DNA of 64,000 nucleotides from Oikopleura dioica (lineage: Eukaryota; Animalia; Chordata), in contig OU015567.1 of the NCBI GenBank assembly GCA_907165135.1, positions 15,314,001 to 15,378,000 on the forward strand, read 5' to 3'. Under the pieces are notes generated by a model that searched no databases, was not told the origin of the DNA, and saw only the letters and a program-made list of their open reading frames with translations. Below are positions 18,801-50,700 of the stretch, piece after piece. The translations under genes were made by a program, and so were the position numbers. Within the stretch, counting starts at the first letter, position 1, and each line of letters begins with the position of its first letter.

Positions 18801-21800
18801 GGAGAAGAACAACTTGACCAGCCGGAATATTTCCAATCGAATGTTTCGCGAGAAATTTTCCGTTCTGACAAACTGCTGTAGCTATAATTGATTTCCAAAG
18901 AAGCGTAGCGCTGCTTTGTTGACTTGAAAACATAAACTTCTAGCCCATCGCTCATGAGGTGATTGACCTTGATCTGCTCATTCATTTTAGCTCCATATCC
19001 GGAGTACTCAATGACTAGCGGTCGTGAAGAATCCTCTCCCCAGATGACCTTAGTTTCTTGATTTCGAAAGTCGTGGCCGTTGAAGATTATTTTTCCGTCT
19101 TTTTTCAGGACCAGATAAACTTCATCAGATGCATGCGACTAGAATTAATCAACATTAGCCCGCAATTTTTAAGAAAACTTACATTTAGCTGCTTGATAAC
19201 AAGATTACGAGCTTCGGGAATTTCCGCAACTCGTACAAATCCCCTTCCACGAGGATAAAATCTCTTCCGGAAGGTCTTACAGGTGCTATCATCCCCATTA
19301 CAGACGCCGCAAGTGTCTTCTTTTGCCAAAGAGTCAATGTTTCCGTCACATCCTAGCTCGTGACATTCACCCTAAATGGTAAATGAATTTAAGTTTATAG
19401 TTATTTCATGTTATTAACGCTGGTCATATTTTCGAAATTTAATATTTCGAAAACAAAGAGGACGACGTAAATGAAGGTAACTGACCTTGATACAGATACC
19501 GCTGCGGTCGGGACGACACAAAGTGCCGTCTTGAACAGGACCATTGTTGCTGATGTGCCACGACCTCGCTGGATCAACACAAAAGAGGTTGCACACCCGG
19601 TCAGAGGAGTCCATCCATTGAGCTTTGAGCGCGACTTTCTTTTGAAACTTTTTACACAGTATGTCACGAGGGTCCTCCGTGGAAACAGGGCAGTTACGGT
19701 CTGAGTTACAGAATCTATGCTTTGAGTTTGATCCTTATCAAAGGTTTATCTTGGACGTTCCAAGTTGGAACAATTTTGTAAAAAAATTACCAAGTAAAAC
19801 CTTTCCTTCGCATTCTGCCCCACCATTTTGCGGGATTGGATTGTTACAAATTCGATTTGAACTTGTAATCCCGCCTTTACAAGTCGACGAGCATGACGAC
19901 CAACTTGACCATTGAGACCAACCACCATCTACCGATTCATCGAAAGGTAGATGCGGGTTCGCTTGAGAGCGAGAGACACATTGCTTATGGTAACATGCTT
20001 TTCCAGCAGCGCAAGCAGTTCCATCTGCCCAAGGTTGATGTCTAGTCGCGCACAGTTCCGACCCGTCTCTGGCTCTTGTCTTGCACCAGAGCTTTGAGCA
20101 GCTCGGGCCTCGTGAGCAGCTTGTACTATCATGACCAAAGACTATAAATAACTATCAAAAAAGCCCATCAAATTTGTAAATTTCCACTATTCGGAAGCTG
20201 TCAGTCTGATCCTTCCTCGCTTAAAATGAAATGATATTATGATTCCTACCTAGTTTGCATTGAACATCCGGTGATATATGAGTCCTGCCAGTGTAGAGGG
20301 AAGCCTGTGGCTGGATCAAAGTTGGACTTCGCACCGAAAACTCCCGCGTCCTACGCATCATGCAGTTTCCTAGTCCTTGATTGATGAGGTCGCCGATCTT
20401 CTGCGATGAGCACTTCGACCACATCCAAGGTCCGATCATTGTTTCTGATGGATAAAGGAAGACGGAGCCCATGATACCTTCTTCCTTCGCGATCGCCTTG
20501 AAAAACATGGTATAGAGCGGTTATAAGGGCAAGTACAATTGCTAACTGCTCGATTTTCGTAAGAACTATACCTGGCATCGTGGGTGATCGTCATGAATGG
20601 CACCAAGTAAGTGCCCAATCTCGTGGGTAATAGTGTAAGCTGTAGCCATGCCTGTGTCCTCAATAATCGCGCAGGATTTACTTGGTGAACAGATTTTGTA
20701 CTTTTCCGCCAATCCAAGTGTGTTACAACTGGGGTCGTTAAGCGAACATAAGTTTTTTTTGGTTATGAGCACAGAGGTATCCCAGTGTTTTTTGTCAAGC
20801 GGGTTGTGGTAGTTTTGGTCGGCTTGCCATCGACAAAACTTTTGAATGGCTTGATAACTGGGCTTCTTTAAAAATGTCTTCACAAAATAGTAATTGTCGT
20901 TATCAAGCCGTTCCTTAGATAAAAGCAAGTCGGCATCAATCGTATCACCAGCGTAGTAAAATAGATTATCAGAACGATAGGGCATAATCTCAGTCCTATT
21001 CGTAAAAGTTCGCAAAAAGTTCAACTACCTATTTAACGCGTTTATTTGCGCACTTGGTATAAAATAAATTGATGGCAAAAGTTTAATCTCAAAGATCTTT
21101 GCCGGAAAGACGGCTTGGTTTATTGCGCGGAGATCGAGAGATTTTGGGAATTGGATAAGCTCGTCAGACCGTTTTTGCGAACAATTGCCTGACAACTTTC
21201 AGCGTAATATCTTGGCCAAGGGAAGGATGCCGGATGATTCCAGCGACGATGGCCATGATTAGGGATTCTCACGGAAAAACAAAGTGAACTCAATTTTCAT
21301 AAAACTTTCACTCTAGATGTATTTTTTTCCGCTGATTCCAAATATGCCAAAATCATTATGAAATTCCGAGTAAGTGGTAATTTACAGCTGATAACGTCGC
21401 TTGGTGGTAAGCCCTAGTACTTGGTTCGGTTTGGAAGTAATCCTTGACTCTGAGTCGACTAATTCTTAGTAAACGGGTAGCTTACCACTTCCGGGAACTT
21501 TTTTGTCCAGACAACCCGCCGTTATTTGTGACAGATTTCCTACAGTAGGTCAAAGTGTGCACCCATCGAGAATATGAAGGGCGCGCTAATGCTTTCCAGG
21601 CCTCCCGGGGAGCGCGTAAAGCACTAGCGCGCCGTCACTTTCAGTCGATCATCGGCAGATTTCTGGAGGTATGAGTCTCCCATATTCTCAAAACTTTCAC
21701 AGAGTCTTAAGAAAAGTATGCTTGAGAACATATCCAAAATTCAGCGTTTTTTAAGCTTGTTTGGGGGCTCAAAAGTAAGAGAAACTCATTTCCGGGCCGC

Positions 21801-24240
21801 GCTCAGCCCGTAATGCACTACCGCGGCGCCAACCTTGGTCAGTCAACAGGTGGTTTTGGAAGGTTCTAGTCAATCCATAGTCTTCAAAATTTGAGTGATA
21901 CTGGCATAGGGTCTGTTTTATAACATATCTAAAAATCACAAAATTATAAGCTTGTTTGCGCATAGAAAAGTCGTGTTTTGTGTGAATTTTGCTGATTTCG
22001 AGGGTATTTTGCCAAAAAAACTATTTTTTGAAAGCAGATAATGAATAAGCTTCATCATTTTAGTAAGCTCGAAATGTTTTTCGCTCAAATTGTCCTGAAA
22101 AAATCAGAATAGCATTTGACAATTTTGAGTGCAGAAGGCCGCGCCGCGCGCAATTTTTCCGTGAGAATCCCTAGCCATGATCTTTGCCAAGTAGTTTTCG
22201 ATGGAAATGACGCTGCTTCCAAGTTGACGGAAAAATCGAGTCATAGAAGGGTCCACAAAAACGGCGACTCTGAGTTCTCGAGGAACTACATATCGTTTTC
22301 TTCGAGTGTGCGAGTTCTTAAATTTTTTATTATTTCATACGCTCATACTTTAAATGAGGAAGTGCTGACTAGAAATTGGCTTGAAAATCGAATCTAAAAC
22401 AACTTCCGTCATTGGTACGAGATCAAGGTTACGCGGCGGCATTAAGGGATCAACTATCCAGATCACTTACACGAGTTGGACGGGTGAAGTGACGAGAGGT
22501 CCGGAAGTCCCTTGGCAATGTGTCCTGCTCCGAGTTTTCTCCACAACTAGCCTCGCCATTGACTTTTCTTCTAGCAGCTTCAAGTTCGTCATCAAAGTCG
22601 AGATCAATCCTGCCATGCTGTCTGTCTTCAATGAAGCCAGTCTGAAAGCTAAAAGTCAAAACAAATCTTGACCGTTGTTCCTTGAAAATAATTCTAAATC
22701 AATTCAAAAATCATCAAAAGTGCCAAAAACATCCGCAACGACCTTGTTTCCGGAGTAAAATGATAATTAATCGTAAATCAGCGGGAGCTTGATTTAATGC
22801 AGCGCTGAAAATAGAAAAAGTCACAAGACATTATCATAAATGTCCGAAAGGAAAGCCTCGCGAAGAGCAATTAATCCTGTCTAATTGGACCTTGTCTACT
22901 TTGCTACCAAGAGAATCTTTCAGGGTTAGGGTTAGGGTCAGAGCTGCAAATTTGCTGAACTGAGTGAGCTGAGCCAACTGAGAGCGACTGCTCAGCTCAG
23001 CTCAGTTATCTTTGAAATCTGATCAGCTCACCTCAGACAATATTCACTCAGCTCAGCTCAGCACAATTATTTTCGAACAAGATCTGTACTGCTCAGCTCA
23101 GCTCAACTCAGACAATTATCACTTAGCTCAGCTTAGCTCAGCTCAACCAGCTCAGCTCAGCTCTAATTAGGGTCCGCTCAGCTCAGCTCCGCTCAATGAC
23201 CTCTGAAAAGGCCAGATCAGCTCAGCTCAGCCAAGTAATCTCCGAAATAAGCCAGCTCAGCTCACCTCAGCAAAAATAAAGCAAAATTTCCAACTCTGGT
23301 TAAGGTTTTATCTTTTTCTAAAAAATCTTCTCGATGTACTTTTGTACTGACAAGTTCATAACGATCTATTCATTTAATAATCTTCCAACAAAGCGGCTTG
23401 GCTTTTTATAAAAATGATTCTGCCGACTGACCAAGTTTTGATAGTCCGGCTTTGAGTGAAAGTATATTGTTTATGCAGCGTAAATTCTCCATAATTATTA
23501 AACGAAACCGGGGATTACGCGAATAATGACCGCGAGAGTCCCCAAATTCGTCGCACAATGGCCTCTTCGCACTTTTACTTTAAATATTTAATTCTTCTGA
23601 AATGTATAGCTTAACTAAATATTCAGCGCAAACGCGGGCCTTTATCCTGTTTGAAGTAAGATGAGTACTGAATTTTAACGAGGTCAATTCTGAAATCGCC
23701 AATTATTTTGACAGGAGGGGCACAATTTAAGTCAAAATTAATTAGCCCCGATATTTTAAGCTTCTATTTTTAGATTCACAATTGAAATCTCCGGAAGTCG
23801 GAAAGTCTCAAGAATCTGCTTTTTTCGCTGATTCATCGAGGTCTAATTATTTTGAATGTGTCACTCGTAATTGTCAAGTTCTGCTTCCTCTAGTCTAGTC
23901 TTTCTATGCCAAATGAATGATTCGTTAGCAAATTTCCTACTCTAAGAAAATGACTGTCTCAGTATTTATGTGCCAAATTGATGACTAAATAAGAAAGGTC
24001 TTTTGCAGGTCGTAACTTATAAATTGCAAAAGAAGTCGATTGGGGTTATTTCCGTTGTTAATTACATTTGATTTGATTTGAGTACTATTACAGTAATGGA
24101 TAGCGTTTTCTTTGATCTTCTAATTATAGCCCAGCGCTAAGCTGTATTGACGCTCTTACAGGTAGGCTATCAGGTCAGATCTCTCGGCCAGAGAGTTTCG
24201 ACTGCCAAGTGCAATTAGCGCAGCAACAAATCATCCCACC
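15849..24240 (-). CDS. ADAMTS9/ADAMTS20/GON-1-like metalloprotease (5' end approximate)
   Basis: Furin site RRKR, then AVFVDPSM; zinc motif HEIGHLLGAIHD (ORF 20566-21024); TSP1 VDGGWSQWSSWSSCS; Cys-rich and spacer regions; many TSP1 repeats (ORF 16599-18734); C-terminal GON domain (FSINLSGTGF, CGGLCAQC). One catalytic-domain exon is interrupted by an insertion at 21260-22173. Confidence 0.9.
21260..22173. mobile_element. 914-bp hAT-like non-autonomous element inserted in an ADAMTS coding exon
   Basis: Perfect 20-bp TIR TAGGGATTCTCACGGAAAAA; 8-bp TSD GCCATGAT at 21252-21259 and 22174-22181; no transposase ORF. Confidence 0.92.
22939..23298. mobile_element. 360-bp hAT-like MITE filled with (GCTCA)n repeats, in an ADAMTS intron
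   Basis: Imperfect TIR CAGAGCTGCAAATTTGCT / AGCAAAATTTCCAACTCTG; 8-bp TSD GTTAGGGT (22931-22938) vs GTTAAGGT (23299-23306), one mismatch. Confidence 0.75.
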
Positions 24241-24571
24241 CACCTTTCTCTCTGCCCAGTACCACTAGAATATGAATAGAAAGGAAGAAAACCGCATGAC
24301 CTGGGATCAACCAGAAGAAACTATTTTTAGAGGTGCAATAAGTACCCTCACCTCTCAGAATAAAAAATATTTACAGGGAAACAATACGAAGCAAAACTTT
24401 TCGACCCCTGCAATCTTACAGTCCCTCGCTGGTACAGTACCTGTTCGCAAATGTTGACAAATGCAGAAGAATATCGGTCGTGATATGTTCTTTGATCGGG
24501 GAACTTCAAGAAAAAGGAAGATATTATATCTTAGTATATCTTAGATATACTGTCAATCAATTTGAAAGACT

Positions 24572-25110
24572 TCAAGACTTCAGTCTACAAAAGTTCGCTT
24601 TATCAGTTACATAAGAGCTGATAAGCACCAGCCGCGTAGGCAGACAAGAAGGAGAAGAAGCGGGAATTCCTAGTAAAAGATAAAATCCTCGTTGTAAGTT
24701 CCCTTTCCTTCCAAAATAAGTGCAATTTTCCGCGATGACAGAATCTTCATCAGTCGAAGAAAGTTCATCGAAATCGTGTGGGACGCGAAGCTCGTAGTTT
24801 TCTTCATCGATCACGCGAATTTGTTTGAGCAGTAGGAGGTGTCTTCGTCCTTCCTTCTCCACGATCAACTCCTTATCACTTCTGCTCGCTAAAGATCGTT
24901 TCCTATTCTTTGGGTTGCAAACTGGAAGAGCGCTAGAAGACAGAAAAAAGCTAGAAGCAACCAATTTCCTTTTTCTCCTCGTTGACTGGCGCGTAATTTC
25001 TGATCGTAGCTGGGCAAAGTTCTCTTCTGATGAATCGTAAAAGCGAATCGCCCCATCTTTGCTTTCCCCATCTGGAAAGTAAAATTTAAAATAAAGCAAC
25101 CGTAAAACAA
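24572..25110 (-). CDS. Hypothetical protein; reading frame ambiguous
   Basis: A 175-aa stop-free frame (24572-25099) overlaps a second frame (24889-25110) with an ATG right after a TTTCCAG acceptor and one hydrophobic segment. Confidence 0.3.
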
Positions 25111-28100
25111 AAGCTTCGACAGCTGAAAAAGTAACTATGATTTATGGCATCCCTACGCATGGACGAACAAATAGCGCGAATTAATTGTCCCACTAATGAT
25201 TTCATTAATGACAAACAATAATTTCATCAGCAAGTTCGCGTTAGAATGAACGACTACAGTTAATAAGAAGCTGCTACTAAATTGATGGTCTCGGAGTCAG
25301 GGCGGCTCGGAGTAACGGAAACATAATTCACACCATGCACAGTATTTCTTCCGGCTTCGGAAGCGGTAAACATATATCAGTCCGTTTTTTATTATAAAAG
25401 TTCAATTTCATTCGAGTTTTTACGTATTTGTCTTACAAACATTCTTTTTCGAATATTCTCGGAGAAATTCAAACTAGAACTGGGCTCGATTTTTTTCTTG
25501 CATTTTGGGATTTCCCTGTTTATTTCTAAATCAGCAGAATTGAAAATTCAAGAACAGAGGCGCTACCGTCGATAATCGGCGTTTAAATTAGCGTCAATGT
25601 TTGCTTTGTGCGAACTTTTTGAAAGTCAAATTATCGATGATTATGTATTTTATGTTGCGCGAATGAAAAGGATATTGTTCCGGCGGAACCGCGGCTCGTC
25701 TTTAGACACATTGGACCTTATTAAATCTCAAGTTCAAACATAAAACTTCTTTTACGAGCACAAACATTTGCATAATTCGTAAAAAGAAAGAATTTCAGAA
25801 GCCGGAGAAGGCCGGTACATAATATCTACAGTAGCGCTGCTAACTTATTTTAACCGCGAAATTTAAAAGCAGCTGAAAATTTTGGCGCGACTTCAAGAAT
25901 TTGCCTAACTAATTCGGTGCTCCACCCATTTGTCAGAGTTTTTTCGTGAGAGTGATCATTTCTAGCCTTTAATTTTCGCTAGTAAATTACTATCGGTTAT
26001 CTCTTGAGCTCTGATGAATCGATGCTCCTTTCCCTGCGCTAGAATTCTACAGTAGATGCTCAATCTGGATCATCAACAATTTGGTAAAGCTTCGAGCAGT
26101 CAATTCAGAATTTTAATCGTATGAAAATGATTCGATAATTTTTCTGGATCCCGCACAATAAAAACTATAATCACTCGGTAATCTCATTCGAAACTAAAAT
26201 CTCAGACTTTCCGCTGGCTTACCGTCAGAAAGAGAAAACTGTCTAACATTGAACATAAATTTGACACTTCCTTTGATCCATTCATAGCGAGTTAATCCTC
26301 CTCAATTACTACTACTGTGCTAAGGAAGTCAAACAAAAAGTTCGAGGGCAAAAACGTGTGGGCTTCAACTGTATCTGACAGTAGAGATGTCAATTCGAAC
26401 TGTTTATTTTTAACCTTTGGGAACTCGTTAATTCAATTAAAAAAAAACTTGGCCGGGTGGTGTGTAAAGAAGCTATTTAGGGAATACTGTTGTTTCAAGA
26501 AGTTTATCCCTGTACACTCTAATTGTGGCGAACAAAAAAGTCTGAAGAGGAGTGCTTCCCATCAGAATGGATTCTGCTTCGGTGACATATTTATGGCAGG
26601 CGGAAATTGAAATGCTCTTGAAGCCGAATTCGCTACTATTTGACGCTACTGTAAATATATCGAACTATTGAAGCCGGTGCAGGATATTCTTCTAAAGAAA
26701 GTTGTGGTGGAGGAATCGTAAAATGGCAATTTGGGAAGGTCAAACTCACCCGGAAAACATGGGCCCCACCGGGAAAAGCAAATTTATTCTGGCTTTGCAC
26801 AGGTTCTCAAATCATCATACCCACTGTCAGCTGCATATTATATGTCAAGTGGGTGACATGCCCTTACCAAAGTGACTCTTAATGTCATGTTCATGGATTA
26901 ATTATCGCGGCCAGGGCTAGAAATCCCCGTCTGATTTGACACGCCGGTTATCTTGAAGGAGACCTATCCAAAAAGTCCTCATTCATCGGGAGTTTGGGGT
27001 ACTGCCCTCAAGGCAGAACGAATTTTCCCTCGAGTCTGTTGCATAAAAATGACCAAAAAAGGGTTAGGGTAATTCCAACCAAAAAGCCAAAGAAACGATA
27101 CCATTAGAAGAGACTATTATTTTGATTGTGACCTTGAGCTGTCAAGAACTTGCGCTACTGTTTGAGTACAATGTACACACAATTTCATGCAACTTTCGAA
27201 ATTAAGTACTTACAGTGGATTAACGAAGAAATCAGCCAGAGGAGAAGTTTTCGTACCATACTTATCTCTACTTTGCCTATGTCATGCCTACTCTGTGGAC
27301 CGGTGAAAAGAGGACAGTTCTATTCTTGTGGCACTAGAATTCGAGCTCAGAACAGAGCTAGAAGCCGCTCAAGCTATTGAGCTGAGTGCGGCGCGCGTAG
27401 AGAGCGCTCGCGCGTCGTAATAGGTGGCGCCGCCTTGGAAACGGGTTAAGATTTTTTCATGCCACCCAGGTTGGACTTGGCTTTCTTTACTTCAATGGGA
27501 AAGTACTGGTCGGTGCTACTGTCTTCATAATTTCGGCATTATCGAGCAGCTTTTTTAATGATAACTATCCATTTTTTTTCAATAAAATGAAGAAACAATG
27601 AGGTTTAATTGCAATTTCATCAGTAGTATTGAGCAATATTCTTCAGTAAAAAACGATACGCAGGCGATCAAAACATTACTTCTCAGAGTTATTTATTGAA
27701 TATTATCATCGCAATAAACGTAAGGGATTAATAACTACCGGTTCACTTTCTCCCAGCGAAAATTTCGATTATCTCAAGTTTCTGATCTGATAATTCCCCA
27801 CTTGGATCCTTCTGAAATTCTCAAATTTCCATCCATTCTCCCGGCGAAAATTTATGAATAAATTTCAACAAATATTTTCAAAGACGAATGTTAAGTTTTT
27901 TCTTTGTCTATCAAAGTGACCGTTAAGTGCGGTTAAGACATCCTAAGTGCCCGACTCCTTCAAAATTATAATTCTAAATTGTTGTTTGAAAATTGAAAAA
28001 TTTCCATTTTCAGAATACCGTTCATCAGAAGCAGTAGAAAGCAAGATTCAAAGGAACGCGTTGACACGGAAATTTATGCAAGTTTTGAACCCAATTCAGG

Positions 28101-28974: not shown

Positions 28975-29212
28975 TTTGATAGTCAGAATGTTTAAATTTG
29001 GATTTTGGCGACTTTCCAAAGCCAATTCAGATAAACTATCAAATACTCAAGAATTACGGAATAAAAGACGCACTGGGAAAACTCTCTGGGCCCTCGTAAA
29101 CGCATGTTCCGTAGCCGTTATTTTAATCTATCCCACTGACCATAATGAGGACCATCTGTTTACGAGAGCGTTCTCAGACTTTCAATTTCCATATTGACGC
29201 TGACCCGCCCCG
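28975..29212 (-). ncRNA. Candidate structured ncRNA with RNase P/MRP-like motifs
   Basis: TGAAAGTCTGAG (29184-29173, CR-I-like); 12-bp helix 29158-29169 with 29090-29101 enclosing CGGAACA (CR-III-like); ATTCTGACTA (28989-28980, CR-V-like). P3 and P7-P9 equivalents are missing or very short. Confidence 0.25.
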
Positions 29213-37492: not shown

Positions 37493-38972
37493 CTAGTTTT
37501 TCTTCATGCCTTTGCCGTACCAGCCGGGCGTGTAATGCTCTTTGAAATTGGTCTTGAAGTTGTTGCTTTCGACTGAAATCAAGGATGAGAATGGAGAACA
37601 ACCATTATTTGAAATCAGCTACCTGGAAATTTAGCGTTGTTTTCTACCATATTGAGAAAGGGAGTCGAAGGTTTGGGATCGTTTTCGTTCAGGGCAGTGG
37701 CAAGAGAGATGAGCGGGTCCTCACTTTCCGAATACGGCGAGATCGGAATGTCGAAGGCCTTGGCCACTTCGCAGAGAATTTGGTCGCTCTGACCTCGAAT
37801 CAGCAAGTCCGCTTTCTTGTCCTTCGGCGTCCACTGCAAGTTGATAATCACCAGCTTGCATTTCTTCGGCCAGAGCACTTTGTAAGCTTTCAGGACTTTG
37901 AGACTTGTTCCGATGCAGACAATCAGATCCGTTTGAGCTAAGAGATGGTTGAGACTGAAAATTGAAATTTTGAAATACCAGCGTGAGTTTCGGCAGTTTC
38001 CCAACGATAGGGAACATCAAATCGGTTCATTTCGCCAAAATGCACAATCGCATCGTACAATTCTTCGTCGCAGTCTTCATTTGGGCACATTCGTCCGGTT
38101 TTATGGCGCTTTACATTCGTCTTTTCTGTCACATCGAATGTTCTTTGGTATTTTAGGAAAAGGGACGGAAGATAACTTCAAATTACCGATAAAAGAAGTG
38201 GCCTTCATCGCAGTTTTCCATGAACATATTTCCATGAATTTCTGAAAGTTGTTCGGGAGAAACACCGCTTCGGAGATGAAGACCATCGCAGTTTTGAGAA
38301 AGGAGAAACTTGAAGATTCCGCTTTTCAGCAATCCGGAAAGCGCTTTCAAAAAGTTTTCGAAAGTCCAAATAATCATTCATTGGATAATTTGAGGATAAA
38401 ACTCTTTCCCATGTGTCCAAGAGTTGGAGTGGCAGTTACCAGATTGCATTGTTTTATGTCTTGCCCTGATGCCAGTGATGACTGAAAATTTAAAAATGAA
38501 GGGATTGACAACAAATTTGAATAAATACTCGAAACTGTTATAAATTCGTACATAAACACCACCAGTCCCGCGATAGTCAGGAATATTCGCCGACGTCGAA
38601 ATCCCTGCTCCAGTGTAAACAATCGGATGCTCAGCATCTCGAATCATTTCGATCAGTTTGGCTACTTTGGGGGCAAGTTCTTCGGCAGTATCGTACATTT
38701 CGGTCAGTCTGGATTGGTTGCACTTTTGTGTTTCCCATTGTCGAGTTAAAATTTTAACCAGTCGGGGGTTTTCGGCAATCAATTGCTCTGAAATCGAAAT
38801 GAGAAAAGGACCTCATTGAAAAATAGAAACCTTGAAACTCGCTTTTGATTTCTGCCTTGAGAGCCGTGGCAAGCTCTTTGCGCTTGCATTTATACTCCGC
38901 TTTGGCATCAGAAATCGCGCCCGAGATTTGCGTGAGAGCACGGGGAGATTTCCTCTTTGAGCCGATCTCCAT
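37493..38972 (-). CDS. SIRT7: NAD-dependent deacetylase sirtuin-7 (class IV)
   Basis: IVYTGAGISTSANIPDYRG; LLSQNCDGLHLRSG; EIHGNMF; VHFGE; KLVIINLQWTPKD; C-terminal GWYGKG, typical of SIRT7. Confidence 0.9.
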
Positions 38973-39111
38973 CGATTTCAACTTTGTTTTACGATTGCAT
39001 TTTTATCTGAAGACGTGGATGTAAAAGAGTTTTGTTTTATTCCGCTTTATTTTATTGAACTTGAAGGAGAATAGTATGGAACTCTGGAACAAAATGGCTT
39101 CAAGACGGTGA

Positions 39112-40204
39112 CTAGTTCTTCGATCGTACTTTTCGATTTTTCTGTGGCTTTTCACGGTTCTCGATAAATAATTCAAAGAAGAAATCCGAGAAGCGCGCAA
39201 GCGGCTTCTCGATTGGGTTGTTACTAATGAGAAAAAGAACCCTTCCTGTGGTGGCCTGAAGTTATTTTCCAAATTTCCGCCATGGAGACATGGAAGAGAA
39301 CGAAGTGCAGTCATCGTTGACGGCGAAAGAAATAGAGGTTGTTTTAGAAGAATCCACATGACGCATTCGAGCAAAGGTGGCGTTGTCAGACTACCTTCGT
39401 AGCAATAAAAGTTTTTGTTTTGAGGAAGAAGTTCGAGAAGTTCCATCGGCTTGGAGATTTGGTACTTTTTGCCGATATCGAAGTTCTTTGGGAAGAATTT
39501 GGTCAGAAACTTTCCAGGGCACAGCGAAGCTATTTCCGATTTCATTACAAGTAAATATCAAGGAGTAAGCATCATTCATGAAATCGTTTTGATACTCTCC
39601 TTCGACGTCATCTCGTTCGTGAATTACAGCACCAACGACTGCCAATCCATCGCCGTTCTTCATCGCTTCTTCTGGCGAGCCGTACTTTTTATTCCAATGA
39701 ACAAAGTGGATTTCTGCATCGCCTGATTCTCCATTGATGAAATGCTCGGCGCCTTGTCCAATTTCAGATCCCTACGGAGAGGTCAATTAGGGGGCAACTT
39801 TGAACTTCTTTCTTACCCAGTGAATATGAAACTGAAGCAACTCATATTCAGAAGACAAATGAGCTCCAGTTAGAGTCGAGCCGGGCTTGAAAGTGACTTG
39901 TACAGAATGCCCATTGCAGAAGATTTCCGAGGCAGTTTCATTCTTCCATTGAAGATTGAGAGCCTTGAGTTTCTTATCAACCTTCACTCGTCCTAATAAA
40001 TTCATTTTGACAAAATTTAACAATAAGGAAAATCATCAAATAGGAGTATTTATAACAGTATTTGGGCGGTCTTTATATAATGGTACGAATTTGTAAGTTA
40101 CCAGTAATTATATCGATTGGGGACTGTCTCTCTCCATTAGCAACAGGGAACTGGGTATCCCACTTTGCTGGAGGACACTCGCTCCTTTCGTATCCCCAAG
40201 ACAT
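39112..40204 (-). CDS. Cytosolic alpha-type carbonic anhydrase
   Basis: MSWGYE...GERQSPIDI; QFHIHW and EIHFVHW (three Zn-binding His present); YEGSLTTPPLLECVMW; NFRPPQ|PQKNRKVRSKN* if a GA-AG intron 39148-39245 is used. Confidence 0.92.
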
Positions 40205-40975: not shown

Positions 40976-41623
40976 TCACGTTTCTGAGGTGGTTGTTTGC
41001 TGTGTTTGTAATTGCAACTGATTCGCTACGGCGTCGGTAATCTGACTTGAAGGGCCACCGGATGGAGGTGGTGGAACTGGGCTAGAATCATCGGGGTATC
41101 CGTATTTTCGTAGAAGCTCAATATTCTCCATCGGCGAAATTGTTCCTTCGATCGTTAGTTTCATGAAGTCAGTTGTGTAGCAAGGAGGAAGAGTGTCGAA
41201 CATTCCCTTCTTATACGCGTCAATCTGGGCTTTTTGGGCGGCTTTTTCAAGGATCAAAAAGTAATTGACTAAGAAAGTTACTTTCTGATTTTCGATCCTA
41301 ACTAATAAAGCAGTCATAGAGCCACCAATCCAGCCCATTGGGACGGAGAAAACAAATTTCACGAATCCCTTATTCCGGAGCAAGAAAAAAGCCGGTCCTC
41401 CAAGCATCAAAGCTCCAGCTCCAGCGGCAGCTGCAAGGGTTGGTGTTCCTGGAACGGCCGCAGCAATCTTCTCCCTAGCGATCAAATCATCAGAAGTAGG
41501 CCTCCAAGCATACGCCTTCAAGTGGGTTCTGCACAAGATTCACAAAAATGCGAAATTGAAAGTCTGTCAGTTCCCTAGCTTTCCATCAATATTCATGCGA
41601 ATAATATCATCTCCGACACTCAT
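40976..41623 (-). CDS. Small membrane protein, weakly OCIA-domain-like
   Basis: ORF 40976-41536 plus a short first exon (probable GC-AG intron); WRPTSDD...two hydrophobic segments...KFVFSVPMGWIGG recalls OCIAD proteins. Confidence 0.45.
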
Positions 41624-41796
41624 TATTTGCTAAAATGGGGAAAGAATTTTATTCAGAAAATCTCATTTTGGATACTTATGAAGAAATTGAAATGAAGAAC
41701 TTTGCAGGATATAAATTGCAATATCACTATAAGAACATGGAAATGACAGTGTATGCTGAAAAATCATCGCTTAGATAAGAAACGCTTGCTAATAAG

Positions 41797-44700
41797 TTAT
41801 TGCACAGGTAAATTTGGGCACTCTTCGTCCCCAGTAATTGGAGAAAGAGATTCACTTTGACTGTGAATTGCGGAGCTAGAGTCAAGGAGAGCTTGAGAAT
41901 TGCGTTTCTTCAGTTTTCCATCTGCTCCGCAAGATAACAGATGTTCCCCACAGAATGCCAAGCCCATCACTCCAGCAGTTGGGTTTTTGAAGACTTGAAA
42001 TATTTTTAATGATTGTTCATCATCCGATTTTACCGGAAGATCTGGGATGCTCAAGCATAAGGACTGAAACGAGCGACTGTTGAGCGAGAGAGCAGATTCT
42101 GATTGAACCATCGGTCGATCCAACCGCGAGGATTTCTCCATTGCCGCTGATATTCAGACATTTTACCATCCCGGCGAAGTTAATCGAAGAAACAACCAGG
42201 TAGTCCTTGTCGACAAACACGAGCCCTCCTTCTTTTCCGCCAACACAAATCAACTAAACATGCGTTTGGTTATCAGCTCAGAGAGGAAAATGACGGACCT
42301 GGTATTTGAGAGAATAAGTGACAGCTGATGCAGATTCGGAGATTTCTCTGAGTTCGAGTGAGTAAATAGGCTCGAGGTACTGCCTTGTGAGGAGATCCCA
42401 AACGCATAGGGCCGAGTTCGAGAAATTTCTATGCACACCAGCTGAGATAAGAATAGAAGAACCTTCCAGAAAGCAAATTGATAAGACATCACGTCCTATG
42501 TTGAATCGTTGCACTGGAGGAAGCACTGAATTTATCTCCATGAAAAGTTTGAAAAATGAGAGCTTTTACGTTGTTGGGAGAAGAGAATTTGGTCGACGAT
42601 CCAAATTCGCACTGATCCATCTTCAGCAAGAGCAGCTAGTCGCGAATAGGGTGGGTCACTTTTCAAACAATTTTTCTGTACGCTTTGTTTTTTGAGCTTA
42701 TCTGATAGAGCTCGTTGCGCTGATCATTTTGAGCCCTCAAATACCTCCGTACCCTTCCGGGAAAATACTTTTGCAGAATCTGGGAAATCATGAAAATCGA
42801 AAATTTTTGGTCAAATTAGGGTCAATTCCGGTATACTCAGAGCTTTAAAATGTGTATAAGATAAGTTCCTGTCGTTTCCCGGAGTAGATTTGGGTATCAA
42901 ATTGACCAGCTTGACGAGTTCTATCTGATGACGTAATAATATCACATGATATGGGGGTGTGCCCAAAAGTTATTCTAGAAAAACCATTTTTTCGAACATG
43001 AATTTTTCAAAAAAAACCCAAAAAAATTTTTTTTTCCTTATCTATTGAAAAAAGTTTTTTATTCGGGTCAGATCTATCACCTGAAAAAATTAAATCAAGT
43101 TCGGAAGACCAACCATGAAAGTGACCCACCCTAGTCGCGAACCAGATTGACAAAAGGTCAAGCATTTTATTCGAGCTTTTGATTCTTTCGAGGAGAGAAT
43201 TCTTGTCACAGAATTAGCCGCAAATTGAATGACATAGATAGGGCTGCCGCCAAAAAAATCAGGTACCACTTTTTGGGTACCTAGAGCTTTTTTACTCGGC
43301 TATTATGTTCTTTGAGTCAAGAAAAACGATTTCCAGCAAAAAAAATGGGTTCCATATGGATGACTCATCGAAAAATAAGCATTCAAAGTGCTTCCGGAAG
43401 CTAACTTCCGGCGGCCTGAATCTTTTTCAATTCTGATGCCGGAAATGGATTCTACGGGTCCGAAAACCTGTAAATCGAGTCTCAAAAAGTGTCAATCTTC
43501 TACATGAGAGCCAGAATCGACGATTTTTGGTCGATTTTCTTTGTTGTTGTCAGATCAAATTTCTTTTTTTCGTAAAAACGAAGGAAATGCTTATCAGTAG
43601 GCCCAAAATTGGTTTCTAGGTTATCGAGGATGCTGAAAAAGGTAAGATGGGCCATGAACCGCGATAAACCGTCACTGTAACCGGTCGGTTTTTCTAAAAA
43701 TTAATCAAAATATTGGATAAACGTTATTAAATCTTGTTAAAAGCCCGTTGATTATTGACATGAATGATATGGCCACCTTTGGTCAAATTTGGTCGAGCTT
43801 GGCCGGAGGACGACCCGGAGGACCAACCTGGTGGAAGACTAAGTACTGGAAGACCAATATTAAAAAAAAAAAAATCCTTGAAGGGCCAGAAATTTCCATT
43901 TTCGGCCACTTTTGGTCGTTTTTGCCGGAGGAACTCTTGGAGGACCACCCTGGTGGGAGACAAACTGCTGGAAGACGCATATTAAAAACAATATTTAATA
44001 AAATTTGAATCTTTGAAGGCCCAAAAATTGCAATTTTCGGCCACTTTTGGTCTTTTGTGCCGGAGGACCTCAAAGAGGACCACCCTGGTGGAAGAAAAAC
44101 TACTGGAAGCCCAATATAAAAAAAAACATATTTAATAAAATTTTAATCTTTGAAGGGCAAGATAATGCCATTTTCGGCCACTTTTAGCCTTTTTATGCCG
44201 GAGAAACTCGAGGAGGACCAACCTGGTGGAAAACAAACTGCAGAAAGACCAATAACAAAAAAACAATATTTAATAAAATTTAAATCAAAGAAGGGCCAGG
44301 AATTGCCATTTCGGCCACGATCGGCCTTTTTTTTGCCAAAAACCGCCGTAAGACAACCCTGATGAAAATAACTGCTTGAAAAAAAAATTTTTAAAAATAA
44401 AATAAGATCCTTGAAGGGCAAAGAATTCCCCTTTTTTGCCATCTTTGCCCGTTAACTGCCGAAAAACTCCTGGAGGAAGACTAACTATAAGCAAACTGCG
44501 TTCATTCAATTCAGTCTTCATCGGGGCCAAGCCGACCCAAAGGAGAGGCAAGCCCCGTCTATTCAATTCGATCAGGATCGGGGCCAAGCCGACCCGAAGG
44601 GGAGGCCAGCCCCGTTTATTCTATTCAGTCAGGATCGGGGCCAAGCCGACCCGAAGGGGAGGCCAGCCCCGTTTATTCAATTCAGTCTTCATCGGGGCCA

Positions 44701-47700
44701 AGCCGACCCAAAGGGGAGGCCAGCCCCGTCTGTTCAGTTCAGTCAGGATCGGGGCCAAGCCGACCCTAAGGGAAGGCCAGCCCCGTTTATTCAATTCAGT
44801 CAGGATCGAGGCCAAGCCGACCCGAAGGGGAGGCAAGTCTCGTCTATTCAATTCAGTCAGGATCGGGGCCAAGCAGACCCTAAGGGAAGGCCAGCCCCGT
44901 TTATTCAATTCAGTCAGGATCGAGGCCAAGCCGACCCGAAGGGGAGGCCAGCCCCGTCTACTCAATTCAGGCAGGATCGGGGCCAAGCCGACCCGAAGGG
45001 GAGGCCAGCCCCGTCCATTCAATTCAGTCAGGATCGGGGCCAAGCCGACCCGAAGGGAAGGCCAGCCCCGTCTATTCAATTCAGTCAGGATCGGAGCCAA
45101 GCCGACCCGAAGGGAAGGCCAGCCCCAACTGTTCAATTCAGTCAGGATCGGGGCCAAGCCGACCCGAAGGGGAGGCCAGCCCCGTTTATTCGATTCAGTC
45201 AGGATCGGGGCCAAGCCGGCCCGAAGGGGAGGCAAGCCCCGTTTTTTCAATTCAGTCAGGATTGGAGCCAAGCCGACCCGAAGGGGAGGCCAACCCCGTC
45301 TGTTCAGTTCAGTCAGGATCGGGGCCAAGCCGACCCGAAGGGAAGGCCAGCCCCGTTTATTCAATTCAGTCAGGATCGGAGCCAAGCCGACCCGAAGGGG
45401 AGTCCAGCCCCGTCTGTTCAGTTCAGTCAGTATCGGAGCCAAGCCGACCCGAAGGGGAGTCCAGCCCCGTCTGTTCAGTTCAGTCAGGATCGTGGCCAAG
45501 CCGACCCGAAGGGGAGGCCAGCCCCGTTTATTCAATTATGTCTCGGGCAGGGCCAAGCCGACCCGAAGGAGGGCCATTCCCGTCTATTCGATTGAGTCTG
45601 GGGCAGGGTCAAGCCGACCCGAAGGGGAGGCCATTCCCGTCTATTCGATTTAGTCAGGATCGGGTTCAAGCCGACACGAAGGGGATTTTCAAAATTGCTA
45701 TTATATCTAGGTGCGGCTTTATGTTCTCGAGATTTTAAAAGCTTTTAACTCTCGCTCCGGGCGTGAACTGGCTCCAACGTAGGGCGCTCATTCTCTCAAA
45801 GAAACCCCGCGCCTCTTCTTCATAGCGCAGTGAATAACACAAAAACAATTTGTTAATATAACAAGATTTCAAAGAAAAATTTGAAAAATCGGCCGATTAA
45901 AAAAAATTCATATAATATGATAGTAATTATAAATAAATTTATGAAATTCTTTATTCAAAATATTATCTTTCCGCTCATGCAATGCCCAGATTCACCCTAT
46001 TTAGAAGGAAATCAAGCAAATACCTCCGCCCCATTTGACTGTTCGATATCTGAAAACCCTTTATTTGCTATATTTTTCTTTCGGGTCAGCTTCGCGCCGA
46101 TCAAGACAAGATTAAATAAACTTTGCTGGCCTCCACTTCGGGTCGGCTTGGCCTCAATTCAGAAAAAATTGAATAAACGGGGCTGGCCTCCACTTCGGGT
46201 CGGCTTGTCCCCGATCCAGACTGAATTGACAAGACGAGGCTGGCCTCTACTTCGGGTCGGCTTGGCACCATTCCTGACAGAATTAAACAGACAAGGCTGG
46301 CCTCCCCTTCGTGTCGGTTTGGCTCCAATCCTGACTGAATTAAATAAATGGGGCTGTTCTCCCTTCGCGTCGGCTTGGCCCCGCTCAAGACTTAAGTGGA
46401 TAAACGGGGCTGGCCTCCCCTGTGGGTCGGCTTCGCCCTGCTCCAGACTAAATTGAATAGACAGGGCTGACCCCGATTCTGACAGAATTGAACAAACGGG
46501 GCTGGCCTCCCCATCGTGTCGGCTTGGCCCCGATCCTGATTTAATTGAAAAGACGGGGCTGGCCTCCCTTTCGGGTCGGCTGGGCACTGCCCAAGACCTA
46601 ATTGAGAAAACGGGGCTGGCCTCCCATATGGGTCGGCTTGGCCCCGATCCAGACAGAATTAAATAGACGGGGCTGGCCTCCCCTTCGGGTCGGCTTGCCC
46701 CGATCCTGACTGAATCGAATAAATGGGGCTGGCCTTCCCTTCGGATCGGCATGGTCCCGATCAAGACAGACTTGAATAGACGGGGCTAGCCTCCCCTTCT
46801 AGTCGGCTTTGCCCCGATCAAGACAGAATTGAATAGACGGGGCTGACCTCCTTTTCGGGACGGCTTGGCCCCGCTCCAGACTAAATTGGATTAACGGGGC
46901 TGGCCTCTCCTTCGGGTCGGCTTGGCCCCGATCCTGACTTAATCGAATTAATGGGGCTTGTATTCCCTTCGGATCGGCATGGTCCCGATCAAGACAGAAT
47001 TGAATAGACGGGGCTAGCCTCCCCTTCTAGTCGGCTTCGCCCCGATCCTGACTGAATTGAATAGACGAGACTTGCCTCCCCATCGGGTCGGCTTGGCCCC
47101 GCTCCAGACTAAATGTGATAAACGGGGCTGGCCTCCTTTTCGTTTCGGCTTGGCCCAGATCCTGACTTAATTGAATAGACGGGGCTTGCCTCCCCTTCGG
47201 GTCGGCTTTGCCCTGCCCCAGATTATATTTAATAAACGGGGCTGGCCTCCCCTTCGGGTCGGCTTGGCCCCGATCCTGACTGAATTGAATAGCCGGGGCT
47301 GGCCTCCCCTTCGGGTCGGCTTGGCTCCGATGCTGACTGAATTGAATAAACGGGGCTGGCCTCCCCTTCGGGTCGGCTTGGCCCCAATCCAGACAGAATT
47401 GAAAAGACGGGGCTGACCTCCCCTTCGGGTCGGCTTGGCCCCGATCCTGACTGAATTGAATAGACGGGGCTGGCCTTCCCTTCGGGTCGGCTTGGCGCCG
47501 ATCTTGACTGAATTGAATAGACGGGGCTGGCCTTCCCTTCGGGTCGGCTTGGCCCCGATCCTGACTGAATTGAATAGACGAGACTTGCCTCCCCTTCGGG
47601 TCGGCTTGGCCCCGATCCTGACTGAATTGAATAAACGGGACTGGCCTCGTATTCGGGTCGGCTTGGCCCCGATCCTGACTTAATCGAATAAACGGGGCTG

Positions 47701-50700
47701 GCCTCCCCTTCGGGTCGGCTTGGCCCCGATCCTGACTTAATCGAATAAACGGGGCTGGCCTCCCCTTCGGGTCGGCTTGGCCCCGATCCTGACTGAATTG
47801 AATAAACGGGGCTGGCCTTTCCTTCGGGTCTGCTTGGCCCCGATCCTGACTGAATTGAATAGACGAGACTTGCCTCCCCTTCGGGTCGGCTTGGCCTCGA
47901 TCCTGACTGAACTGAACAGACGGGGCTGGCCTCCCCTTTGGGTCGGCTTGGCCCCGATGAAGACTGAATTGAATAAACGGGGCTGGCCTCCCCTTCGGGT
48001 CGGCTTGGCCCCGATCCTGACTGAATAGAATAAACGGGGCTGGCCTCCCCTTCGGGTCGGCTTGGCCCCGATCCTGATCGAATTGAATAGACGGGGCTTG
48101 CCTCTCCTTTGGGTCGGCTTGGCCCCGATGAAGACTGAATTGAATGAACGCAGTTTGCTTATAGTTAGTCTTCCTCCAGGAGTTTTCGGCAGTTAACGGG
48201 CAAAGATGGCAAAAAGGGGAATTCTTTGCCCTTCAAGGATCTTATTTTATTTTTAAAAATTTTTTTCAAGCAGTTATTTTCATCAGGGTTGTCTTACGGC
48301 GGTTTTTGGCAAAAAAGGCCGATCGTGGCCGAAATGGCAATTCCTGGCCCTTCTTTGATTTAAATTTTATTAAATATTGTTTTTTGTTATTGGTCTTTCT
48401 GCAGTTTGTTTTCCACCAGGTTGGTCCTCCTCGAGTTTCTCCGGCATAAAAAGGCTAAAAGTGGCCGAAAATGGCATTATCTTGCCCTTCAAAGATTAAA
48501 ATTTTATTAAATATGTTTTTTTTTATATTGGGCTTCCAGTAGTTTTTCTTCCACCAGGGTGGTCCTCTTTGAGGTCCTCCGGCACAAAAAGACCAAAAGT
48601 GGCCGAAAATTGCAATTTTTGGGCCTTCAAAGATTCAAATTTTATTAAATATTGTTTTTTTTTAATATGCGTCTTCCAGCAGTTTGTCTCCCACCAGGGT
48701 GGTCCTCCAAGAGTTCCTCCGGCAAAAAACGACCAAAAGTGGCCGAAAATGGAAATTTCTGGCCCTTCAAGGATTTTTTTTTTTTTTAATATTGGTCTTC
48801 CAGTACTTAGTCTTCCACCAGGTTGGTCCTCCGGGTCGTCCTCCGGCCAAGCTCGACCAAATTTGACCAAAGGTGGCCATATCATTCATGTCAATAATCA
48901 ACGGGCTTTTAACAAGATTTAATAACGTTTATCCAATATTTTGATTAATTTTTAGAAAAACCGACCGGTTACAGTGACGGTTTATCGCGGTTCATGGCCC
49001 ATCTTACCTTTTTCAGCATCCTCGATAACCTAGAAACCAATTTTGGGCCTACTGATAAGCATTTCCTTCGTTTTTACGAAAAAAGAAATTTGATCTGACA
49101 ACAACAAAGAAAATCGACCAAAAATCGTCGATTCTGGCTCTCATGTAGAAGATTGACACTTTTTGAGACTCGATTTACAGGTTTTCGGACCCGTAGAATC
49201 CATTTCCGGCATCAGAATTGAAAAAGATTCAGGCCGCCGGAAGTTAGCTTCCGGAAGCACTTTGAATGCTTATTTTTCGATGAGTCATCCATATGGAACC
49301 CATTTTTTTTTGCTGGAAATCGTTTTTCTTGACTCAAAGAACATAATAGCCGAGTAAAAAAGCTCTAGGTACCCAAAAAGTGGTACCTGATTTTTTTGGC
49401 GGCAGCCCTAGACATAGACATCTCCTGATGCGCTTCCTGCGACGTAAACCATCGGGTCACTAAATACAAAAATTGAAGGATAAATACATATTGACGTCTT
49501 ACGTTGGAGAGGCGACTAATCGACGGATGTCTTTGAATGGTAGACGACTTCGAACTTCCAGTTTCGAATTGCCAATGACGGGATAAAACTCGATTATCTC
49601 GGTCGCTGTTGAAATGGCCACTTGCTGAGACTCAGTTTTTAGGGCGCTAAAATGGTGTTTTTGATCATTTAGTTACTCAAAGTGTCTGTTATGCTACAAG
49701 AGGTTATATTTTCTGTGCGATGAATAGAAGCGAGTTGTATAAAAGTAGCTGGTTAATTGGCTGTTTACTTGAACATTCAGATACCTTTTATATGCACTAT
49801 TTTGGCTTCGAAAAAAACTAGTCAAGTATTATTTTTTATGAATGCGTACCTAAGAGTCATATCATCGCTGTCTTTTTGCAGTGGATACAAAAGCGACAGT
49901 GTGGTCGATTTTGGAAGCAAAGAACTGCTACAAACTGAGTATACCACCTCAGGATCCGTGTAAGAGACTTTTGTATTCTTCTGGATCTCCATGTGACTGT
50001 GCGAGACTTCCTCGTAGTCCTCTCGATTTTGAACTAAGATAATATAAATTTCTCGTTATAAAAAGGCATTTTACCCGCAATCTTGTCATAGACAAATTGG
50101 TAGAAAAACGGCTTCAACAAGTGAACTTTCGAAAGAAGAATCCACTGAACCGAAAGCTCTCTTGCAACGAGACTGTTTCCAGATGAAAATGGATTCAGCT
50201 GCTCGATAGACATATCTGGCGTGAAATTCGGTATCGCTTCCAGTGGCAGGTCAATGTCAGAAAGAATGTCAAACTCGTCGAATGACCATTTTTTGATCAA
50301 ATCTTCGATTCTTTTCATCATATTCGACTCCAGCATTCGATTTAGTTCTTTTGACGAGTTTTTACGATTGCTATTTCTTTGACTGAAGATCATTCTAATT
50401 TAACTCGTTCCTGCTAATCTCTGCTGGACAATAACGAGTGCTACCGCTCTGCTCAGTCTCGGGAAGAAAGCCATTCGATCGTTCAATTCCGAATCGCATT
50501 CATGAAATCCATCATCGTCCATGTACTCCTCATCGAATAGATTTTCGAAGAACTCGTGCCGATCTTTGATATCTTGAAGGAGCAAATTCAGCAAATGATC
50601 GTTCTCCAACGGTGGGGTAAACTCATGCGTTGAGGATAACGAGCCAAATGCTAGAGCAACTCTCAAGAACAGAGAAAAGTAAAGCAGATTACCTTTCATC

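Follow-up and report, generated by a model that had tools for sequence, protein, structure and literature searches.

Recent hAT-type insertions in coding exons of Oikopleura dioica as candidate nascent introns

Oikopleura dioica, a tunicate with a very small and gene-dense genome, is the classic animal case of massive intron turnover, and the mechanism behind it is still debated. A 64-kb stretch of chromosome 2 in the Okinawa assembly OKI2018_I69 (15.314-15.378 Mb, on the autosomal long arm and not Y-specific; hereafter the window) raises the question of whether transposons lying within coding exons can be removed from the transcript as new introns. The initial annotation had described three elements of 914, 487 and 6172 bp, here E1, E2 and E3, with TAGGG/CCCTA ends and perfect 8-bp TSDs, as a family of exonic insertions and a candidate introner system. 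We re-read and rescanned the sequence, and the three structures were recovered as described (Table 1).

All three elements lie in exons, and collapsing them restores the ADAMTS and DMXL frames that had been quoted. The ADAMTS exon then reads ..ENYLAKIMA/IVAGIIRHPSLGQ.., and the DMXL exon, with E2 and E3 both collapsed, reads DPMVYVAGSASGDVYV/IQFAANSVTRILSSKESKARIKCLTFCQSGSR/LAALAEDGSVRIW.. over 49+97+103 = 249 nt, or 83 codons. By Pfam the host genes carry Reprolysin (ADAMTS) and Rav1p_C (DMXL), and for the large ADAMTS exon, the precomputed domains of its closest Logan homologue include TSP1_ADAMTS and GON. ORFs of at least 100 codons make up 54% of the non-TE window, compared with 10% in shuffles; apart from the element insertions the long ORFs are intact, and DMXL probably contains a 1-nt homopolymer error near 52262-52266. 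The verified introns of the window are 41-47 nt long and GT..AG, with GTA[AC]G donors and YAG acceptors.

Table 1. Elements E1-E7, their TSDs and the interrupted exons, in window coordinates.
Feature	Position	Strand	Description
E6	9049-10124		1076 bp, CAGAG, TIR CAGAGTTTGTAA, TSD GTCCGAAC/GTTCGAAC with one mismatch
ADAMTS9/20-like exon, interrupted by E1	21170-22334	-	Furin site RRKR, start of metalloprotease domain
E1 TSD, left copy	21252-21259		GCCATGAT
E1	21260-22173		914 bp, non-autonomous hAT-type, 20-bp perfect TIR TAGGGATTCTCACGGAAAAA, without long ORF
E1 TSD, right copy	22174-22181		GCCATGAT
E7	22939-23298		360-bp degenerate CAGAG element, TSD 7/8, TIR 10/12
DMXL/Rav1 WD40 exon, single, holding E3 and E2	42536-49459	-	
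E2 TSD copy	42639-42646		GTCGCGAA
E2	42647-43133		487 bp, MITE-like hAT-type, 16-bp perfect TIR TAGGGTGGGTCACTTT
E2 TSD copy	43134-43141		GTCGCGAA
E3 TSD copy	43231-43238		GACATAGA
E3	43239-49410		6172-bp foldback hAT-type element, 107-bp perfect TIR
E3 57-bp repeat	44504-45685 and 46471-48145		Inverted arrays
E3 TSD copy	49411-49418		GACATAGA
E4	57768-59467		1700 bp, CAGGC, TIR CAGGCATATAAATT, TSD AAGTAAAT at 57760-67 and 59468-75
E5	58245-58652		408 bp, ends CTGGGGTC, TSD CTCCGAAG, nested in E4

E1-E3 belong to the hAT superfamily as non-autonomous elements that are unrelated to one another, two being MITE-like and one a foldback. The hAT-like nature proposed at first holds: the 8-bp TSDs are perfect in E1-E5 and 7/8 in E6 and E7, with a single copy at empty sites, and the ends are YARNG-type in E1-E3 (TAGGG) and in E6 and E7 (CAGAG), those of E4 (CAGGC) and E5 (CTGGG) being off by one position. 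Against the target nTnnnnAn, judged on three sites only, E2 fits (TTCGCGAC, minus strand), E1 fits by half and E3 does not. The arms of E3 (43239-44500 and 48149-49410) are 98.7% alike across 1262 bp, which makes it a foldback element. The word family has to be given up, the interiors and TIRs of E1-E3 being common only in the 5-bp TAGGG terminus. No transposase-like ORF was found within any element, E3 included, or elsewhere in the 64-kb window, and E1, E2 and E3 each occur only once in the window. In X25, a DNA run of the same lineage, multiple copies of E2 and of parts of E3 are shown by a depth 3-10 times higher and by loose ends into foreign flanks. By calculation, 64 kb should contain about 2.5e-5 chance pairings of a perfect 8-bp TSD with a perfect 14-bp TIR within 7 kb, and a relaxed scan of 20 shuffles returned 0-3 weak matches and 0 perfect ones.

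A comparison with other DNA, proposed along with the introner idea, yielded an empty site for each of the three. A TARA metagenome gDNA scaffold (L002), 92-95% identical to the window and with its introns present, has an uninterrupted ADAMTS exon with a single TSD copy at the E1 site. Both DMXL sites are empty in a sister-lineage scaffold (L003), where the exon is again uninterrupted. Within the lineage, an X25 contig joins 42635 to 43131, skipping 495 bp, at the full depth of 192, and E2 is missing from both haplotypes of this second individual; the Illumina-derived contigs of X25 contain the junction between E3 and its 49411 flank, at a depth that is heterozygous-like. E1-E3 are therefore recent cut-and-paste insertions into coding exons, and the lineage is polymorphic for E2.

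These three belong to a wider wave. E4 follows codon 7 of thymidylate synthase (ATG 57747, plus strand) and its site is empty in L004 and L005; E6 interrupts a conserved Cys-rich coding exon (..CPCGANCPN/GCKGCENSIC..) and its site is empty in P0124 and L085. Presence and absence thus alternate at conserved exon positions in L002, the X25 contig, L003, L004/L005 and P0124. E7 adjoins a TTAGGG repeat and falls within the extent of the 5' ADAMTS gene model. Counted together, E1-E4 and E6 give at least five independent elements with 8-bp TSDs in the CDS of four genes within 64 kb. The claim that TAGGG elements are exonic and the others not fails on E4 and E6, and no exon enrichment was detected in the window, 5/6 elements in CDS at a coding fraction of about 0.5 giving p of about 0.11. 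The density is about that of random insertion into a genome that is about 50% coding.

Taking this density together with the genes it affects, we hypothesize that E1-E3 are nascent, introner-like introns, a reading of putative splicing to which we give an even chance. Coding insertions this dense, in DMXL, thymidylate synthase and similar genes, would be tolerable only if most of the alleles function, and the likeliest route would be removal of the elements from the pre-mRNA by a permissive Oikopleura G*-AG spliceosome, with splice sites drawn from the TSD, the TIR or the flanking host sequence. The load argument is extrapolated largely from one window. About 11% of introns in the Okinawa genome are non-GT/AG (PMC8008620).

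In-frame and stop-free G*-AG solutions are available for all five coding elements; since the GGG of TAGGG ensures that every acceptor can be paired with an in-frame donor starting in G, finding such a solution is not in itself evidence. The AG noted earlier near each TIR end is present; it carries little weight, as an AG within 12 nt occurs about 50% of the time by chance. At E2, a host CTA ahead of the TSD copy at 42639-42646 extends the direct repeat to 11 bp, so that on the minus strand a GG..AG intron could remove the element exactly; the alternative would be a GT..AG intron with loss of 12 nt (4 aa). E4 could be removed through the GTAAAT donor that its TSD provides. The in-frame options of E1 (donor GGGATT, acceptor GAG, a 0.9 kb intron) and E3 (donor GGGCTG, a 6.2 kb intron) are GG..AG only and weak, and would leave +18 and +15 nt, that is footprints of 6 and 5 aa. 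It counts for nascent introns that E6 already falls within a modelled 1172-nt GT..AG intron (8970-10141) of the public annotation. RNA runs X5 and X6, from a divergent lineage, gave 6 and 9 partial reads, none across element junctions, and the coverage of RNA run X1 was confined to the neighbouring carbonic anhydrase gene.

Other observations count against nascent introns and favour plain loss-of-function alleles instead, the product of an active hAT system inserting near-randomly into a half-coding genome with no productive splicing. The copies would then be young, rare, recessive and deleterious, heterozygous in one lab-cultured male and fixed in the collapsed assembly; we regard this as rather unlikely, yet a serious contender. 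The perfect-TSD coding insertions E1-E4 are very young, with perfect TIRs and empty sites for E1-E3, and their age and frequency pattern, including the absence of E2 from both X25 haplotypes and the heterozygous-like depth of E3, is that expected of deleterious alleles; exons are neither enriched nor depleted relative to the coding half. The RNA-seq-guided public annotation cuts the ADAMTS gene in two at E1 and models no intron across it: the upstream model extends into E1 for 23 codons before reaching a stop at 22106-22104, and the downstream model (1496 aa) starts at an ATG in the left E1 TSD (21256-21254, minus strand). At the E3 junction, the TAG of TAGGG is an in-frame stop, and the candidate sites and lengths of E1 and E3 are far from those of the real introns. 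Against loss of function stand the five CDS insertions in four genes on one 64-kb haplotype, a load estimated to be orders of magnitude over mutation-selection balance for DMXL or thymidylate synthase nulls; the window is moreover autosomal, and its long ORFs are otherwise intact. E6, older because of its TSD mismatch, lies in a gene that the annotation nevertheless models as spliced around it.

The same E6 model also fits a bypass without element-defined introns, through exon skipping, an old donor joined to a cryptic acceptor, or a new start or trans-splice site, which we consider improbable. The annotated intron takes in E6 plus 47+9 nt of exon, joining a pre-existing donor to a cryptic downstream acceptor; skipping of the 249-nt DMXL exon would stay in frame; and the E4 TIR offers an ATG at 59461 from which ATGCCTGAAGTAAATAAAGAA.. 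is in frame with thymidylate synthase. However, these bypass forms are predicted from sequence and annotation, the tiny Oikopleura introns imply intron definition and so disfavour exon skipping, the loss of 83 aa from a WD40 propeller is perhaps not tolerated, and no bypass is apparent in the annotation at E1. That a long-read assembler misplaced the elements is hardly credible: the assembly is Nanopore-based (PMC8008620) and the DMXL homopolymer error is probable, but perfect TSDs and TIRs mark transposition rather than misassembly, the E3 junction recurs in independent Illumina-derived contigs, and E2-family copies exist with other flanks.

For nascent introns of the kind considered here, the closest known systems differ in instructive ways. 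The Aureococcus introners (Gozashti et al. 2022, PMC9860276, Fig. 2F-G; Huff et al. 2016) are likewise exon-inserting non-autonomous DNA transposons with 8-bp TSDs, and their presence or absence varies, there between isolates. They keep the TSD and a few element bases in the mRNA (+12 nt, 4 aa), in parallel to the 5-8-aa footprints first proposed for E1-E3. In Aureococcus, however, splicing is shown and the families consist of many near-identical short copies with canonical splice sites, whereas E1-E3, as candidate introns, are unrelated, 0.5-6.2 kb long and, for E1 and E3, would need GG donors. A systematic screen found repeated intron families in genes of an Arctic Oikopleura MAG (PMC9860276, Suppl. 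Table 6); these introns of the same genus are about 200 nt long with mostly GT donors and a TSD/TIR status given as "?", and unlike E1-E3 they come without a hAT link or population data. In another larvacean, Fritillaria borealis (Henriet et al. 2019; Soo et al. 2026, PMC13326754), exonic transposon insertions became U2-spliced introns; these are MITE-derived, with AG/AC or AG/AT termini and a YAY triplet at both borders, in a genome that has a duplicated U2AF and in which GT/AG introns make up less than 10% of the total. The window has short GT..AG introns instead, and its E1-E3 have TAGGG..CCCTA ends and 8-bp TSDs. Introns of the Fritillaria type were considered and rejected: the window introns are GT..AG, and AG/AY termini do not arise in any exact-excision register of E1 or E3. 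Intron gains by transposon insertion in Oikopleura are tabulated in PMC3443670; those of O. dioica (Denoeud et al. 2010, as cited there) concern the same species complex and are reportedly few events, with their transposon origin proposed from indirect evidence.

The hAT type of E1-E3 also recalls maize. Wessler and colleagues, from 1987 onward, reportedly found exonic Ds/Ac (hAT) insertions to be spliced out via cryptic sites in the element ends; these elements are said to have 8-bp TSDs and TAGGG/CAGGG-type termini, as in the exon-borne E1-E3. Sites near the TIRs reportedly remove most of the element, with small in-frame changes and a leaky allele, although the cases are said to be single plant mutant alleles with canonical GT-AG sites and not a genome-wide pattern. 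To our knowledge, the intron gains reported for O. dioica have not been described in terms of hAT type, 8-bp TSDs or presence/absence alleles.

The loci described here are dated presence/absence alleles of hAT type in conserved exons (DMXL, ADAMTS9/20-like and thymidylate synthase) of a chordate that can be kept in culture. Its genome is publicly available, and RNA-seq of the same lab culture is reported in the genome paper. If the elements are not spliced, these loci reveal a surprisingly heavy burden of transposon alleles that disrupt exons, and a public annotation broken up by such insertions, which matters to users of the OKI2018_I69 gene set. Extended to the whole genome, our reading is that the Okinawa lineage may harbor an active, hAT-mobilised non-autonomous set that inserts into exons and is putatively tolerated via exact or small-footprint G*-AG splicing, which we put forward tentatively, at somewhat below an even chance. 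If carriers splice the elements, intron birth would be observable allele by allele and testable by crosses and reporters. Tolerance through G*-AG splicing would then mean ongoing, polymorphic intron birth in a chordate, and would directly explain how the 11-12% of non-canonical introns and the well-known intron turnover of O. dioica come about.

Direct reading of the sequence and two independent scans recovered the three TAGGG/CCCTA-ended elements E1, E2 and E3 at the coordinates of the initial annotation, each with an 8-bp target site duplication (TSD) and perfect terminal inverted repeats (TIRs). By our own estimate, a perfect 8-bp duplication combined with a perfect TIR of 14 bp or more would arise by chance about 2.5e-5 times per 64 kb, and the same scan of shuffled sequence gave zero perfect TSD/TIR matches; a chance origin of these perfect structures is excluded. 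With 8-bp TSDs and YARNG ends, the elements have the structure that defines non-autonomous hAT transposons, in agreement with the class first proposed. They had also been regarded as one family, a view that was not sustained: sequence comparison shows that E1, E2 and E3 have in common only five terminal bases, no second copy of any of them was found within the 64-kb window, and the "family" is simply a common hAT-type terminus. E3 is a foldback element, with 98.7% arm-to-arm likeness across 1262 bp and a core in which a 57-bp repeat forms two inverted arrays; no transposase-like ORF was found in E3, and the window yielded no autonomous transposase partner of E1-E3.

Elements with 8-bp TSDs in the window
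Element	Position	Length	Ends	TSD	TIR	Site
E1	21260-22173	914 bp	TAGGG/CCCTA	GCCATGAT	20 bp, perfect	
E2	42647-43133	487 bp	TAGGG/CCCTA	GTCGCGAA	16 bp, perfect	
E3	43239-49410	6172 bp	TAGGG/CCCTA	GACATAGA	107 bp, perfect	
E4	57768-59467	1.7 kb	CAGGC	AAGTAAAT (8 bp)		after thymidylate synthase codon 7
E5	58245-58652					nested inside E4
E6	9049-10124		CAGAG	8 bp, one mismatch		splits ..CPCGANCPN / GCKGCENSIC..
E7	22939-23298			GTTAGGGT		degenerate; only insertion without a clear coding position

The genes that host E1, E2 and E3 are all on the minus strand, and the exonic position of the three elements was confirmed. E1 interrupts an ADAMTS9/20-like gene, whose reading frame runs ..HTRRKRYVVPRELRVAVFVDPSMTRFFRQLGSSVISIENYLAKIM ahead of the element and AIVAGIIRHPSLGQDITLKVVRQLFAKT past it (downstream); the following exon contains HEIGHLLGAIHDDH and gives a Pfam match to Reprolysin, and for the large 711-aa ADAMTS exon the closest Logan homologue (94% identical) has TSP1_ADAMTS and GON domains. 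E2 and E3 are separated by 97 nt within a single exon of a gene identified as DMXL from a Rav1p_C match in upstream ORFs; once both elements are collapsed, this exon measures 249 nt and reads DPMVYVAGSASGDVYVIQFAANSVTRILSSKESKARIKCLTFCQSGSRLAALAEDGSVRIWIV.. Elsewhere in the gene (~52262-52266), two minus-strand DMXL ORFs (52216-54915 and 51221-52282) that lie in different frames overlap without an intervening intron, and the conserved motif ..AALK(N)AFALLGKRRYLEA.. requires one extra A in the ttgAAAAcgc run; the probable cause of this frame break is a homopolymer error in the Nanopore assembly, the alternative being a genuine frameshift. The 3' end of DMXL adjoins a carbonic anhydrase gene (38955-39954, minus strand).

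Coding exons are also interrupted by E4 and E6, with CAGGC and CAGAG ends respectively, and the earlier statement that only TAGGG elements are exonic had to be abandoned. When E4 is collapsed, thymidylate synthase reads ATG ACC ACT GTC GAA GTA AAT / AAA GAA GAG CAG CAA TAT.., and its Pfam domain begins three residues further on. A JGI search with thymidylate synthase exon 1 yielded one genomic (L004) and one spliced (L005) sequence of a sister lineage, both at ~81% identity, with the same start-codon position and no E4; they were used for the ancestral state and not as a splicing test. L005 (JGI Ga0314685_10072599) consists of an upstream-gene part (133-362), corresponding to window 56868-57097, followed by thymidylate synthase (664-1591), an arrangement that resembles a polycistronic precursor of the operon type. 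The thymidylate synthase ATG of the window has a ttcag acceptor 9 nt ahead of it.

The target stretch of E6, in a Cys-rich exon, is uninterrupted in a sister-lineage ORF (P0124), and the one-base decay of its TSD marks E6 as an older insertion. The annotated gene model P0123 treats 8970-10141 as a single 1172-nt GT..AG intron that takes in E6 plus 47 nt and 9 nt of exon at its sides, and drops ~19 residues still encoded by P0124. The interior of E6 (9195-9939) shows inverted similarity of 78% over ~750 bp; E6 is foldback-like, as E3 is, and not a simple MITE. Interstitial telomere repeats (TTAGGGTTAGGG) occur at 5199-5240 and 22926-22937 (3 matches, against 0 expected from shuffles), one of them directly adjoining E7. 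Overall, five of the six independent 8-bp-TSD insertions in the window fall within CDS. ORFs of 100 codons or more occupy 54% of the non-TE window, compared with 10% in shuffles, and at a coding fraction of ~0.5 the observed proportion (p ~0.11) indicates neither enrichment nor depletion; the insertion pattern looks near-random, as if selection had not yet acted.

Other DNA was searched for empty sites, and the uninterrupted state was seen for E1, E2 and E3. For E1, a TARA Oceans metagenome scaffold of 525 nt (L002), with 92-95% identity to both flanks, carries a single copy of ATCATGGC without the element; the scaffold is genomic DNA, because flanking intron sequence is retained. A sister-lineage metagenome scaffold (L003, 75% nucleotide identity) has the DMXL exon without E2 and E3. 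X25, a DNA run of another individual under the same species label, contains 85% of the sampled words, and one of its contigs links 42635 to 43131, skipping 495 bp that correspond to E2 plus one TSD. The depth of this contig (192) equals the total depth at the site, and E2 is therefore absent on both X25 haplotypes. Linked differences that help to tell the haplotypes apart at this site lie at 42317, 42353, 42407 and 42421. E3 is present in this second individual, where a contig connects its terminus with the 49411 flank at depths consistent with a heterozygote. At 41730-42077, X25 has two haplotypes (~95x and ~104x) separated by 30 differences in 348 positions (8.6%), and one of the two matches the window exactly; heterozygosity is extreme at this locus, and the X25 population is extremely polymorphic. 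The empty sites show that all three insertions are derived and recent, E2 is polymorphic within the lineage, and the recent activity that had been proposed is supported by the empty sites and by the presence/absence of E2.

The reference introns, taken as those verified by cDNA or by eye, show that window introns are short (41-47 nt) and of the GT..AG type, with GTA[AC]G donors and YAG acceptors. Automatic intron discovery with a PWM from ORF joins produced noise (156 "introns", mostly false) and was discarded. The AG/AC introns of Fritillaria (PMC13326754) differ from these GT..AG introns, and this type was ruled out for the window. Splice-site enumeration showed that an exact GG..AG removal of E2 is possible, because the host TAG after the TSD matches the TAG that starts the element and gives an 11-bp repeat; the alternatives are a GT..AG removal with 4 aa lost and a TIR-internal GT..AG removal with 8 aa gained. 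The TSD of E4 generates a consensus-like GTAAAT donor, from which GT..AG removal would cost five non-conserved residues; a CAG or CAA 17-20 nt beyond the element would be the acceptor side for this donor, and the right TIR of this element carries an in-frame ATG at 59461. Near the ends of E1 and E3 the only solutions are GG..AG, adding 18 nt (KSLIMA, acceptor GAG) and 15 nt (YPIYV), with the donor after the second TIR base in both and the acceptors 8 and 5 nt short of the element end, and the candidate introns would measure 0.9 and 6.2 kb against a genome median of 49 nt. In-frame solutions weigh little, because the Gs of TAGGG give a G-start donor in all frames, and an AG at most 12 nt from the element end arises by chance in ~50% of cases. 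E2 and E4 appear spliceable and E1 and E3 doubtful.

Two bulk RNA runs (X5 and X6) come from a divergent cryptic lineage despite the same species label, with 6 and 9 partial reads on the window. A metatranscriptome (X1) contains the window's lineage and covers only carbonic anhydrase (39600-39954), where a 45-nt GT..AG intron (39771-39815) is spliced; this is the sole RNA evidence obtained from the window's lineage. RNA-seq of this Okinawa culture is reported in the genome paper. Protein-database and JGI searches for cDNA across the insertion sites gave genomic or sister-lineage sequence only, the 1496-aa annotated ADAMTS model lying beyond the protein lengths covered. The public annotation, built with AUGUSTUS and RNA-seq hints (PMC8008620), is mixed in what it suggests about splicing: it puts E6 in a GT..AG intron, and it breaks the ADAMTS9/20-like gene at E1 into two models. 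The 258-aa model continues 23 codons into E1 to a stop at 22106-22104, and the 1496-aa model starts at an ATG in the E1 TSD copy (21254-21256). The transcript-alignment and mapping tools behind this annotation usually down-weight or drop non-canonical junctions; if that happened here, the missing E1 intron is weak evidence.

We judge it an evenly balanced proposition that most coding-insertion alleles would be rescued in RNA through element- or TSD-defined introns. A rather less probable, though serious, explanation is that the coding insertions are unspliced null alleles: every one with a perfect TSD is very young, another individual lacks E2, E3 is apparently heterozygous, candidate donors are poor, and at the E3 junction the terminal TAG gives an in-frame stop. 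However, a single autosomal haplotype carries, in 64 kb, five coding insertions in four genes, DMXL and thymidylate synthase among them, whereas mutation-selection balance permits tens of such null alleles per haploid genome, or ~0.05 per window by our estimate, and the older E6 sits in a host gene still modelled as spliced around it. It is unlikely that the insertions are bypassed otherwise, by exon skipping, a cryptic acceptor or a new start. A mixture of these outcomes is quite possible. A Y-specific or degenerate region behind the insertion load was ruled out, the window (chr2:15,314,001-15,378,000 of OKI2018_I69) being part of the autosomal chr2 long arm. Two loci of record OU015567.1 (GCA_907165135.1) match the window at 100% identity.

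Splicing of Ds elements from exons is an old observation in maize, and its mechanism resembles the one proposed here for rescue through element-defined introns. In Aureococcus, introners with 8-bp TSDs leave 12 extra nt in the mRNA (PMC9860276), and the mechanism proposed here matches theirs. Introner families have been listed for an Oikopleura MAG (PMC9860276, Supplementary Table 6), and intron gains by transposon insertion have been tabulated in Oikopleura (PMC3443670); our literature search found no paper on a hAT-based polymorphic intron system in O. dioica. Gene sets for OKI2018_I69 are probably fragmented by such insertions. The kind of system is already known, and the novelty would lie in a hAT-based one that is still polymorphic in O. 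dioica itself.
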